Assembly (NCBI RefSeq): GCF_001194135.2
Contig: NC_068989.1
Location: forward strand, 10,653,383-10,717,382
DNA length: 64,000 bases
Direction of reading: 5' to 3'
Source of the DNA: Octopus bimaculoides
Lineage: Eukaryota
Below, in pieces: positions 8,766-22,264 of this stretch; position 1 is the first letter of the stretch, and the number at the start of each line of letters is the position of its first letter. The notes below the pieces were generated by a model that was not told where the DNA came from, ran no database searches, and worked only from the letters and a program-made list of their open reading frames with translations. A program made the position numbers and the translations under genes.

Positions 8766-8976
8766 ATGAAGAGTCTTGTCGCAGCCAAATCAGAATTCAA
8801 AAGAAACAAGGAAAAGTTAAGCAAACTCTATGAGAAATATATTGATATATTGAACACTACCTTCCCGTGTATGATAAATCACCTTACCTCCGAAGATATC
8901 ATAGCAAATGCTGCCAAAAACATCCAAGAAACACAGAACGCATTAAACGATACTCAATGCACCATTATTTTTACAG
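8766..8976 (+). CDS. DLP-pseudokinase exon 1 (N-terminal helix, MKSLVAAKSEF...CTIIFT)
   Basis: tttgcag|ATG; ends ACA G|gtatgt (phase 1), joining exon 2 to form the P-loop. An ATG directly after an acceptor implies an upstream UTR or coding exon not identified here. Confidence 0.8.
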
Positions 8977-20900: not shown

Positions 20901-22264
20901 GAGAGAGGGAGGGAGAGGGGCTGCAGTGGGATTTGAACTCACAGCTCCGAAACCCACAACAAGTAAATAATATCTCAGCGCATTCTGTACGACGTCGTAC
21001 CTACTGACCGTGAACGGTTTTACCTACTGACTGTGTACACATTCTATCGTGTACATGCATGTATACAGTATAGTTATTGAACACCAAAGCAGCTTATTAT
21101 TATTATTATTATTATTATTATTATTATTATTATTATTATTATTATTATTATTATTATTATTATTATTATTATCATTATTATTATTATTATTAATATTATT
21201 ATTATTATTATTATTATTATTATTATTATTATTATTATATATTTATTTTCTTATTTACAGATACCTGCACCACGAATCCCTTGCAAAAGTCATACAAGCT
21301 ATGAAAGGAGACGAACCAGTTCCAGTTATTTTGTTTGATGAACGTTTATTCCCGCTCAGATGGCGAACTAACAATATTACTCAACGAAAGCGGATACCTG
21401 TTGAGTCTTACAGTGTCTTCATCAGAAATATAGCTTCCGGGCTAGTTTACATTCACTCCCACGGGCTCGTCCATCCTGAAGTATCTTTGGACAGTGTCAT
21501 GGTGAGTGTTAAGACCTCTATGTAATATTCCCTTACTTCTTTCACCGTATTTTGCTGGTTATCTGATGCCGACCAAAGCCTTATGAGTGGATTTGGTAGA
21601 CAGAAACTGAAAGAAGCCCATCATATATATATATATATATATAATTTAGAGAATAGATTATTTTAATGATTATTACTTTGTATTTTATCATAGTTCTTTT
21701 TAGTGTATTTACTTATTAAATTATTCTATATGTGACTGGATTTTCATGGATAAGTTCATGAACTGTCTGTTTGTTTCTCTGATTTAAGTATTTGATTAGT
21801 TATTGTTAAGAAATGTAATGTGGGAATCGTGAAATATAAGTTGTTTTAATAGAAACAAACCCATTTATTATATATTTTCATTCTGTTTATAGGTTAATTG
21901 GCACCAACAAGTGAAACTTACCGGAATGGCATTACCACGTAAACTGACAATTGTAGATTCGGACCAACCGATTCAGGATATGGTGTATCTCGCACCAGAA
22001 GTTCTAAGAGGTGGAATATACGAATCACCAGCAGATGTGTTCGGTTTTGGTCTCTTGATTTGTGAATTGTACATAAAAAAGAGGGCATTTGGAGACAAAA
22101 CTAGATTATCCATTTCCAGGTTTCTTAACGAGGTTGATGCTACTAATGTGGAATATTTTGAACTCATTCCTGATAACTTAAAGGGGATAGTGCCAAAAAT
22201 GCTCTCAAGTTCACCGTCTGAAAGACTCACATCTAGTAATATTTGGAGAACTCTTGAAATCTAA
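8766..22264 (+). CDS. Gene model: dynamin-like GTPase - helical stalk - pseudokinase fusion, about 955-970 aa, 10 or 11 coding exons
   Basis: join(8766-8976,10497-10780,12141-12290,13687-14024,14634-14904,15493-15678,17024-17694,[20201-20387 unresolved],21261-21501,21893-22264). All introns are GT-AG. Phases 1,0,0,2,0,0,2,2,0 match across every junction; only the interior of exon 8 breaks frame. Confidence 0.85.
9725..10250 (-). mobile_element. RTE (BovB-like) LINE reverse transcriptase fragment, antisense in intron 1
   Basis: GVKQGDILAPTLFSLYF; GIYVRYRSSGRLFNLRR; LLYADDCDL; FGLSISLDKTVVMFQP; FVYLGSTLS. One frameshift near 9990. Confidence 0.9.
10497..10780 (+). CDS. DLP-pseudokinase exon 2 (G1 GETGAGKST; G2 region LPHHAISCTSTIC)
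   Basis: ctgacag|GT GAA ACT GGA GCT GGT AAA AGT; ends TTA AAT|gtaaga. Confidence 0.92.
12141..12290 (+). CDS. DLP-pseudokinase exon 3 (G3: CGLIFVDTPGIGENDAM)
   Basis: Not in the ORF track; ttttttcag|TGT...GAC AGG|gtaaga, 50 codons, phase 0-0. Confidence 0.92.
12740..13060 (-). mobile_element. tRNA-derived SINE family D (GCAGGCGTGGCTGTGTGG...CATGGCCGCA-type), degraded
   Basis: Reverse complement matches 19210-19650 and 50010-50305, including CATGGCCG and the GACTAAAG region. Confidence 0.7.
13111..13312. repeat. Compound (TTG)n(TTC)n microsatellite
   Basis: Directly visible; source of the spurious poly-L/F and poly-R/T ORFs. Confidence 0.97.
13687..14024 (+). CDS. DLP-pseudokinase exon 4 (G4: TLFVFNRWD)
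   Basis: caaacag|ATT TTG AAA; ends TAC AG|gtagac (phase 2). Confidence 0.9.
14634..14904 (+). CDS. DLP-pseudokinase exon 5 (coiled-coil stalk)
   Basis: caaacag|G TGG CTA; ends GAA TTC|gtaagc; heptad-like E/K/L-rich sequence. Confidence 0.88.
15493..15678 (+). CDS. DLP-pseudokinase exon 6
   Basis: atttcag|GCA AGA CAA; ends GAA ATG|gtaagg, phase 0-0. Confidence 0.85.
15795..16375 (-). mobile_element. Internally deleted mariner transposase relic, antisense in intron 6
   Basis: LEDQPHSGRPSTSRT; KFVTHLLTEDQKQSR (WVPHEL-like); FSKVITGDERWCY (first catalytic D). Confidence 0.85.
17024..17694 (+). CDS. DLP-pseudokinase exon 7 (stalk and linker)
   Basis: ttttcag|GAT TCC AAG GAC ATG; 671-nt open exon ending CTT TC|gtaagt (phase 2). 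Confidence 0.88.
17801..18252. mobile_element. MITE-like element with 73/74-bp terminal inverted repeats enclosing a (TTC)n tract
   Basis: 17801-17874 is the near-perfect reverse complement of 18180-18252; TA-rich flanks; (TTC)n at about 17873-18012. Confidence 0.75.
18590..18850 (+). mobile_element. tRNA-derived SINE family B
   Basis: GTGGCTTAGTGGTTAGG (A-box-like) and GGTTTCGATTCC (B-box-like), followed by a body ending in a family A-like tail. Confidence 0.75.
19210..19650 (+). mobile_element. SINE family D with internal (TATC)n
   Basis: GCTGTGTGGTGAGGAGTTTGCTTCCCAACC...GGGTTCAGTCC...GACCAAAGCCTTGTGAGTGGATTT...CATGGCCGCA...TGAAACAAGTAAA. Confidence 0.85.
20201..20387 (+). CDS. DLP-pseudokinase exon 8 region with internal frame discontinuity
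   Basis: Acceptor atacag|G gives the phase-2 frame SLTSLPVFQIATINN...; donor GCA AG|gtaagc gives the phase-2 frame ...NAKSIDSEIYTFLTFVLHAR needed by exon 9. 187 nt is not a multiple of 3, so a 43-nt intron (20286-20328) or a 1-nt indel is required. Confidence 0.6.
20587..20910. repeat. (GA)n/(GATA)n microsatellite block
   Basis: Directly visible. Confidence 0.95.
21093..21240. repeat. (TTA)n microsatellite just upstream of the exon 9 acceptor
   Basis: Directly visible; source of the poly-Leu part of ORF 21049-21525. Confidence 0.97.
21261..21501 (+). CDS. DLP-pseudokinase exon 9 (kinase subdomains around IV-VIb; IASGLVYIHSHGLVHPEVSLDSVM)
   Basis: atttacag|A TAC CTG; ends GTC ATG|gtgagt. 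Clear IASGLxYIH..xLVH kinase alphaE-catalytic loop pattern with HPE in place of HRD. Confidence 0.9.
21893..22264 (+). CDS. DLP-pseudokinase terminal exon (VKLTGMAL, YLAPEVL, ADVFGFG, PSERLT)
   Basis: tttatag|GTT AAT TGG; kinase subdomains VII-XI; TAA at 22262-22264. Confidence 0.92.
   Translation, partial: VNWHQQVKLTGMALPRKLTIVDSDQPIQDMVYLAPEVLRGGIYESPADVFGFGLLICELYIKKRAFGDKTRLSISRFLNEVDATNVEYFELIPDNLKGIVPKMLSSSPSERLTSSNIWRTLEI

Follow-up and report, generated by a model that had tools for sequence, protein, structure and literature searches.

Few families of molecular machines and switches have been studied as closely as dynamin-superfamily GTPases and protein kinases. Among the GTPases, the bacterial dynamin-like proteins (DLPs; Nostoc BDLP, PDB 2j68/2j69, Campylobacter DLP1/2, Mycobacterium IniA) and the mitofusins MFN1/2 and Fzo1 are the closest described systems to the product of LOC106877344, a forward-strand gene of Octopus bimaculoides of which nine coding exons occupy positions 8766-22264 of the window analyzed here (the whole 64,000-nucleotide stretch of DNA). 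They share with the octopus protein the GxxxxGKS-x3-N, DxPG and N[KR]WD motifs, helices that precede the P-loop and join a neck bundle, and a long two-bundle stalk, and they are its best solved-structure matches by sequence and by fold. None of them has the C-terminal kinase fold of the octopus protein, which further differs from them in having an extra 80-residue N-terminal helical domain and no paddle or transmembrane hairpin, and in being metazoan and, as predicted, cytosolic. The hydrophobic hairpin at the stalk tip of bacterial DLPs and mitofusins is shared by most members of the family to which the octopus protein belongs, but not by the octopus protein.

Other systems resemble this arrangement in part. 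The ROCO proteins (LRRK1/2, DAPK1 and the Dictyostelium Roco kinases) likewise combine in one polypeptide a G domain with a kinase or, in some cases, a pseudokinase, and offer the concept of a nucleotide switch coupled to a kinase fold, but they use a Ras-like Roc domain with a COR dimerization domain where the octopus protein has a dynamin-type G domain and a stalk; the two fusions have independent origins. In MLKL a conserved pseudokinase is also attached to a helical, membrane-acting part. This likeness is conceptual, since MLKL lacks a GTPase and carries a four-helix-bundle executioner domain, and MLKL was not an outstanding match to the octopus protein by sequence or fold (Pfam, Foldseek). 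DSTYK (Dusty, ‘RIPK5’) is of the same length class (~930 aa) and has the same order, an N-terminal region followed by a C-terminal kinase; it has an unusual HRD[LI]KLxN loop in common with the family consensus, with very low sequence identity to the family outside the kinase. DSTYK has been termed ‘poorly known’, with no fold given for its N-terminus (PMC7012607, PMC9573974, PMC10492769), and in zebrafish lacking Dstyk, pre-vacuolar carriers dock at the notochord vacuole yet remain unfused (PMC7012607, PMC10658360). Our full-text literature searches found no paper describing a dynamin GTPase and a protein kinase in one polypeptide, or a dynamin-like GTPase-kinase family.

We consider it rather probable that LOC106877344 is the octopus member of an old metazoan family of dynamin-like GTPase-kinases and encodes a GTP-gated machine with a dead-kinase module. 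The observed parts of this explanation (the structure of the gene, the identity of its domains and the state of their motifs, along with conservation, purifying selection and taxonomic spread) are held with high confidence.

Gene structure and domain architecture of LOC106877344

Nine coding blocks in the window, all bordered by canonical AG acceptors and GT donors and compatible in phase, join into one open reading frame (ORF) on the forward strand. The joined blocks comprise 907 codons plus a stop and are letter-identical to residues 93-999 of the LOC106877344 protein (P0001; 999 aa, ‘uncharacterized’ at NCBI). An earlier interpretation made from the letters alone (the sequence-only reading) had counted ten blocks within this span. 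The tenth is the first coding exon, a single exon for residues 1-92 that lies ~2.6-2.9 kb upstream of window position 1 on chromosome CM046609.1 (GCA_001194135.2), to which the window is 100% identical; a search for it in the readable window gave no match even at E = 100. With this exon placed outside the window, the ATG at 8766, directly after an acceptor, encodes an internal methionine and is not a start codon. All but the first of the ten coding exons of a single expressed-type gene lie within 8766-22264.

The exons follow the domain order of the protein. Coding exon 2 of 10 (8766-8976, residues 93-163; acceptor ttgcag/ATG, donor CAG/gtatgt) encodes the helices preceding the G domain and closes with the first base of the codon for the P-loop residue Gly163, split as G/GT over 8976 and 10497. 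The remainder of G1 GETGAGKST (8976 plus 10497-10522) and the G2/switch I motif SCTSTIC (10571-10591, with T190/T192) are on exon 3 (10497-10780, residues 163-257), G3 DTPG (12159-12170) is on exon 4 (12141-12290, residues 258-307), and exon 5 (13687-14024, residues 308-420) carries G4 NRWD (13789-13800) and completes the G domain. The acceptor of the latter exon (13687, caaacag/ATT) was fixed by identity to the LOC106877344 protein. Exon 6 (14634-14904, residues 420-510) encodes the long outgoing stalk helix and exon 7 (15493-15678, residues 511-572) the stalk (trunk) helices. Exon 8 (17024-17694, residues 573-796) contains a degenerate paddle region (residues 578-627, 17039-17188), the returning stalk helices, a linker and the kinase N-lobe, including Arg777 of ITIR (17636-17638) and the alphaC residue Glu791. 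The kinase hinge, alphaE and the dead catalytic loop HPEVSLDS (21472-21495) are on exon 9 (21261-21501, residues 796-876). Exon 10 (21893-22264, residues 877-999 plus stop) encodes KLTGMA in place of KxxDFG, with Gly887 at 21923-21925, followed by APE (21992-22000), the kinase C-lobe and the TAA stop (22262-22264).

Exon 8 by itself covers everything from the stalk tip to alphaC of the kinase N-lobe, with the returning stalk helices and the linker in between. Since stalk and kinase N-lobe reside in the same exon, the GTPase-kinase fusion is not an artefact of the gene model. Two short contigs of relatives from public sequencing runs, L002 (3214 nt; ORF 86-3142, 1018 aa) and L003 (3418 nt; ORF 146-3223, 1025 aa), each carry both domains in an uninterrupted ORF, and the octopus protein aligns to L002 as a single tblastn segment spanning every octopus intron position, as for a spliced mRNA. 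These exon and contig comparisons indicate that the fusion of GTPase and kinase in one gene is real, as the sequence-only reading had proposed.

Pfam recognizes Dynamin_N at residues 159-296 (E = 1.9e-17; 64.3 bits, cutoff 27) and Pkinase at residues 784-996 (E = 5.8e-20; 72.2 bits, cutoff 31.7), with PK_Tyr_Ser-Thr matching the same kinase region above its curated cutoff (E = 4.4e-17). The N-terminal 92 residues have no Pfam match. Neither a Roc nor a COR family is among the Pfam matches of the octopus protein; with a Dynamin_N-type G domain in their place, ROCO identity is rejected. All four G motifs are intact, and no variation is seen among 85 family members at G163, E164, G168, K169, S170, N174, N342, W344 and D345. 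The top solved-structure match by sequence is Nostoc BDLP (2j68, E = 2.1e-11, phmmer against PDB), and the next sequence matches after the family itself are bacterial DLPs and not mitofusins.

The fold was predicted with AlphaFold2 (AF2) from an 85-sequence alignment (mean predicted local distance difference test score [pLDDT] 79, predicted template-modeling score 0.66). This model replaced an earlier one from 8 sequences, in which the kinase had a pLDDT of 25-50 (75-96 in the final model); the ranking of GTPase folds is identical in both. In the final model, four short helices at residues 14-83 precede long helices (88-154) that lead into the G domain (157-390). These are followed by a helix of ~100 residues (394-491), more stalk helices to 573, a low-confidence stretch (578-627), returning helices (628-720), a disordered linker (724-744) and a bilobal kinase fold. 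pLDDT is 70-93 across residues 10-575 and 628-720, where segments from both sides of the G domain build BDLP-like neck and trunk bundles, and 86-96 in the part encoded by exon 10. The upstream-encoded residues 14-83 form two similar helix-loop-helix units (pLDDT 82-92), of which oyster relatives have one.

Foldseek against PDB places BDLP first (2j69, E = 3.9e-18 over 720 aligned columns), followed by IniA, the Campylobacter DLP pair, mitofusin-1/2 (~1e-11), SynDLP and Fzo1. For the C-terminal domain, the matches are Src/Abl, BRAF, BMX, LIMK1 and IRAK4, at target TM-scores of 0.6-0.75 (0.70-0.75 for Src/Abl, BRAF and BMX). On sequence and model grounds, the G domain is of the BDLP/mitofusin class and the predicted stalk is a two-bundle helical one. 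The sequence-only reading fares well here: its four G motifs, its BDLP/mitofusin-class G domain, its helical stalk free of transmembrane segments and its exclusion of a Roc-COR arrangement all stand, and the HMMER and AlphaFold/Foldseek comparisons that it had suggested return the GTPase, stalk and kinase it had named.

The stalk tip sets the cephalopod proteins apart from most of the family. In 65 of 85 members there is a transmembrane-like hairpin at this position (Kyte-Doolittle window ≥1.6 at residues 560-615), ~35 residues long, strongly hydrophobic and broken by Pro/Gly, at a site equal to the BDLP paddle and the mitofusin anchor. The hairpin is absent from all five cephalopod-type sequences; its octopus equivalent is 17039-17188, and the best 19-residue Kyte-Doolittle window of the octopus protein, 1.12, is outside the stalk tip. 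The absence of the hairpin in octopus is a derived loss. Because of it, LOC106877344 probably encodes a soluble protein, or one that binds membranes only peripherally.

Kinase fold, family spread and an apparent relationship to DSTYK

Where the family consensus has PVALK...HRDLKLxN...KLADVG...APE, the octopus kinase fold has EITIR...HPEVSLDS...KLTGMA...APE. The VAIK lysine is replaced by Arg777, the HRD aspartate by Glu869, the catalytic-loop lysine and asparagine by Ser871 and Ser874, and the DFG aspartate by Gly887, and the Gly-rich loop GxGxxG is absent; Glu791 of alphaC, His867 and APE are kept. The same five substitutions, together with the missing Gly-rich loop, occur in five of five cephalopod-type sequences. 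By sequence criteria the octopus domain is a pseudokinase with a fold like that of tyrosine kinases and tyrosine kinase-like kinases, which agrees with the dead kinase proposed earlier. Nei-Gojobori ratios of nonsynonymous to synonymous substitution (dN/dS) against O. sinensis are lowest in the pseudokinase (0.27), followed by the stalk (0.29) and the G domain (0.41). More distant cephalopod-type sequences are no less similar to the octopus protein in the kinase fold (42-54% identity) than in the stalk. These values indicate that the dead kinase is under purifying selection and is not decaying.

For a view of the family, a profile built from the GTPase and stalk only, with no kinase, was searched against 1.84 billion representative proteins. 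It retrieved 167 clusters (50% identity) at E≤1e-30, a number that rises to 2553 at E≤1e-10. Among the best matches, many have a length of 950-1100 aa, and a kinase domain is present in 82 of 155 retrieved family sequences. Full-length members were found in stony corals, an octocoral, hemichordates, amphioxus, Lingula, a nemertean, many bivalves and gastropods, and octopods (Cnidaria, Hemichordata, Cephalochordata, Brachiopoda, Nemertea and Mollusca). Their database names are either ‘uncharacterized’ or automatic (‘dual serine/threonine and tyrosine protein kinase-like’, ‘MAP3K12’, ‘CSK’, ‘bacterial dynamin-like protein’). The family consensus kinase looks active. The sequence-only reading had taken the protein to be lophotrochozoan, which is too narrow: the same architecture extends far beyond molluscs, from cnidarians to cephalochordates. 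This is an ancient fusion, reaching from cnidarians to chordates; it is abundant, and selection acts on it even where one half has lost catalysis.

Copy number varies widely within the family. Amphioxus has dozens of paralogues, and there is strong expansion in corals and bivalves as well; among the matches of the first protein search there is one protein each for O. bimaculoides, O. sinensis and Argonauta. Cephalopods thus appear, from these matches, to hold one copy and not an expanded immune-type family. Some members have additional domains. An N-terminal HEPN_DZIP3 domain precedes the GTPase-kinase body in proteins from Ostrea edulis (P0312, 1465 aa; E = 1e-26) and Oculina patagonica (P0316, 1297 aa; E = 2e-32), and one amphioxus model (P0147) has a Trypsin_2 domain at its end, perhaps through a fusion in the gene model.

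The dead-kinase state is not a novelty of octopus or of molluscs. Eleven amphioxus and hemichordate members have the same signature, a dead loop H-x-E-[LV]-S-[LM]-D-[ST] together with a DFG position without Asp, and neighbor-joining trees group them with the cephalopods (bootstrap 96/100 for full-length sequences, 100/100 for the kinase domain). With the GTPase and stalk columns alone, BLOSUM distances recover the pseudokinase group. There is moderate support from these trees for an old bilaterian pseudokinase branch that includes cephalopods, amphioxus and hemichordates.

DSTYK was compared with the family because many members are automatically named DSTYK-like and because the HRDLKLxN loop of the family resembles that of DSTYK. 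The DSTYK proteins (P0338-P0457) were fetched with a query that matches database DSTYK at up to 100% identity. The unannotated N-terminal region of vertebrate DSTYK comprises ~650 aa. Profile comparison with hhalign of the N-termini of 104 family members and 32 DSTYK proteins gave a probability of 92.9% (E = 3.7e-7), with a core spanning G1 to G4; the alignment is collinear across 589 columns at a relaxed setting, and a control with reversed columns gave a probability of 0.8%. A shallow 5-sequence profile hit the same DSTYK site (E = 1.7e-4), and a hidden Markov model (HMM) of the DSTYK N-terminus finds 15 family proteins at E<1e-3, with the match falling on their G domain. The kinase domains of DSTYK and the family are homologous (E = 1.4e-39), and comparison of full-length profiles reports the kinase match alone.

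In DSTYK the GTPase motifs are degenerate (G1 GQDCNVKC, G3 APCQG, G4 KVPK) and the kinase is intact; Pfam marks the kinase alone on DSTYK, with no Dynamin_N. The octopus protein itself does not have the Dusty-type catalytic loop, and the likeness to DSTYK holds at the level of the family. From these profile alignments, DSTYK appears to be a distant vertebrate relative that has decayed the other way: its GTPase motifs are dead and its kinase is live. This relationship was absent from the sequence-only reading, and our full-text literature searches found no paper stating that the DSTYK N-terminus is GTPase-like.

Together these comparisons raise the idea of an unrecognized second class of animal GTPase-kinases besides ROCO, in which a membrane-anchored GTPase of the mitofusin/BDLP type joined to a Dusty-type kinase would be the ancestor, and its descendants would have undergone complementary decay. 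We find the case for such a class evenly poised. The same balance holds for its complementary pattern, in which cephalopods and some amphioxus and hemichordate paralogues would have kept the GTPase and vertebrate DSTYK the kinase.

Introns, assembly gaps and neighboring sequence

An assembly gap of 10 Ns (10279-10288) lies in the intron that splits the P-loop codon (8977-10496, forward strand), with (TA)n and (GA)n/(CA)n runs on either side of it. As the orthologous O. sinensis intron measures ~5.5 kb, the gap may conceal intronic DNA. It hides no coding sequence, because transcript-derived relatives read through GETGAGKS at this position without insertion and the Gly163 codon is rebuilt by the flanking exons. 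A reverse transcriptase-like ORF fragment, called by eye from its motif LLYADDCDLV, abuts the gap on the minus strand (9928-10278); Pfam gave no match to it at E≤1e-3.

Other repeats occur in and around the gene. Remnants of Tc1/mariner-type transposases (HTH_Tnp_Tc3_2, E = 7.8e-16) lie in its 11-kb first intron at 1597-2019 and 2094-2456 on the forward strand, and a second similar fragment is downstream (47871-48242, forward strand). There are very long intronic repeats of trinucleotide type at 13105-13330, 17860-18030 and 21080-21250, the last of which ends ~10 bases before the acceptor of exon 9. Eleven assembly gaps are scattered over the window. Downstream, two minus-strand exon series (27623-31230 and 42971-44396), with one VWA domain per exon (E = 1e-37 to 1e-42), represent one or two multi-VWA genes on the strand opposite LOC106877344; the segments 28873-29675 and 30791-31605 are internal duplicates (83% identical).

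Alternative explanations and implications

How a GTP-gated machine with a dead-kinase module would operate can be proposed from its best-matching relatives. By analogy with BDLP and mitofusin, GTP would drive G domain-G domain dimerization, forming a dimer or oligomer, and a closed-to-open movement of the stalk would allow this peripheral-membrane machine to tether or remodel membranes. The conserved dead kinase would serve as a docking or allosteric module and not as an enzyme, and, if DSTYK is a guide, the setting may be endolysosomal or vesicle fusion. We regard this mechanism as a whole as tentative, with the doubts slightly outweighing the support.

Several points weigh against parts of this explanation. 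All structural claims about the octopus protein rest on predicted models, and without the hydrophobic hairpin the membrane association of the cephalopod proteins is uncertain. In Kimura-distance neighbor-joining trees of the GTPase and stalk columns, bootstrap support for the pseudokinase clade falls to 16/100, so that convergent decay or long-branch attraction may account for part of the grouping. The link between the family and DSTYK is remote as judged from the profiles; a shallow 5-sequence HMMER profile against single DSTYK sequences was not significant (E = 0.03-3), and carrying the DSTYK phenotype over to the octopus family is an analogy.

One rival explanation, suggested by the sequence-only reading, is an innate-immune membrane effector, Mx/GBP-like or MLKL-like, whose GTPase would oligomerize on pathogen or host membranes with the dead kinase as trigger or switch. 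Lineage-specific expansions and domain fusions of the HEPN_DZIP3 kind are typical of conflict and immune genes, and both are found in the family, as dozens of paralogues per genome in the expanded amphioxus, coral and bivalve lineages and as the extra N-terminal domain of the oyster and coral members. Against this explanation, the search matches include a single protein for each of the three octopods, no tandem copy of LOC106877344 was found within the 64-kb window, dN/dS (0.27-0.41) gives no signal of diversifying selection, and Pfam finds no executioner-type domain at the N-terminus. We consider the immune explanation unlikely for the octopus gene; it is better backed for the expanded amphioxus, coral and bivalve paralogues than for the single-copy cephalopod gene. 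Membership in the class of MLKL-type effectors was rejected, with no Pfam match to a killer domain and with a GTPase and stalk upstream of the pseudokinase.

The kinase could alternatively be atypical and not dead, with Arg777 and Glu869 substituting for the canonical residues as in WNK or CASK, which would make the protein a GTPase-regulated kinase like ROCO/LRRK. Such activity would fit the retained alphaC Glu791, His867 and APE, the chemically conservative nature of the lysine-to-arginine and aspartate-to-glutamate changes, a kinase domain constrained like the rest of the protein, and the active appearance of most family members. It is distinctly improbable when five catalytic positions and the Gly-rich loop are gone together, including the Mg-binding DFG aspartate (Gly) and the catalytic-loop asparagine (Ser), and when the identical combined loss is found in all cephalopod-type sequences and 11 deuterostome relatives. 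Similarly, an octopus mitofusin, the GTPase of mitochondrial outer-membrane fusion, with an added domain is suggested by G4 and the P-loop, as MFN1 also has an NRWD-type G4 and a GKSxxxN P-loop, and by the Foldseek matches to MFN1/2; but bacterial DLPs precede mitofusins among the sequence matches, BDLP outranks them by fold, and the relatives of the octopus protein form a separate large family. This makes a mitofusin identity of the octopus gene highly improbable, and orthology to mitofusin/Fzo1 was rejected on the absence of a transmembrane-like segment or hairpin and on a C-terminus with a kinase fold instead of HR2. Finally, the NCBI model is computational, and a 3.5-kb repeat-rich intron separates exons 8 and 9 (17024-17694 and 21261-21501), as might be seen if a dynamin-like GTPase gene and a neighboring kinase gene had been joined in prediction or if the locus were a pseudogene. 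That idea is already largely refuted and retains hardly any probability: the stalk end and kinase N-lobe share one exon, the ORF is intact with canonical splice sites, dN/dS is well under 1, and intronless transcript contigs of relatives show the same arrangement, as do more than 80 clusters from six phyla.

A GTPase-kinase family with a dead-kinase branch is the preferred explanation. A fusion that is ancient, abundant and selected points to a coupling of nucleotide-driven membrane mechanics with a kinase-fold module. Human DSTYK is linked to disease (urinary-tract malformation, SPG23), and its N-terminal two-thirds have no assigned fold or function. The remote collinear match offers a testable idea for this protein, whose zebrafish phenotype is a block in membrane fusion. 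If a second class of GTPase-kinases exists, it would explain why loss of Dstyk blocks the fusion of docked carriers with the notochord vacuole, and the ‘unique’ DSTYK N-terminus, a site of human variants, would gain a structural identity. For cephalopod biology, LOC106877344 is an apparently single-copy, conserved and uncharacterized candidate regulator of membrane traffic.

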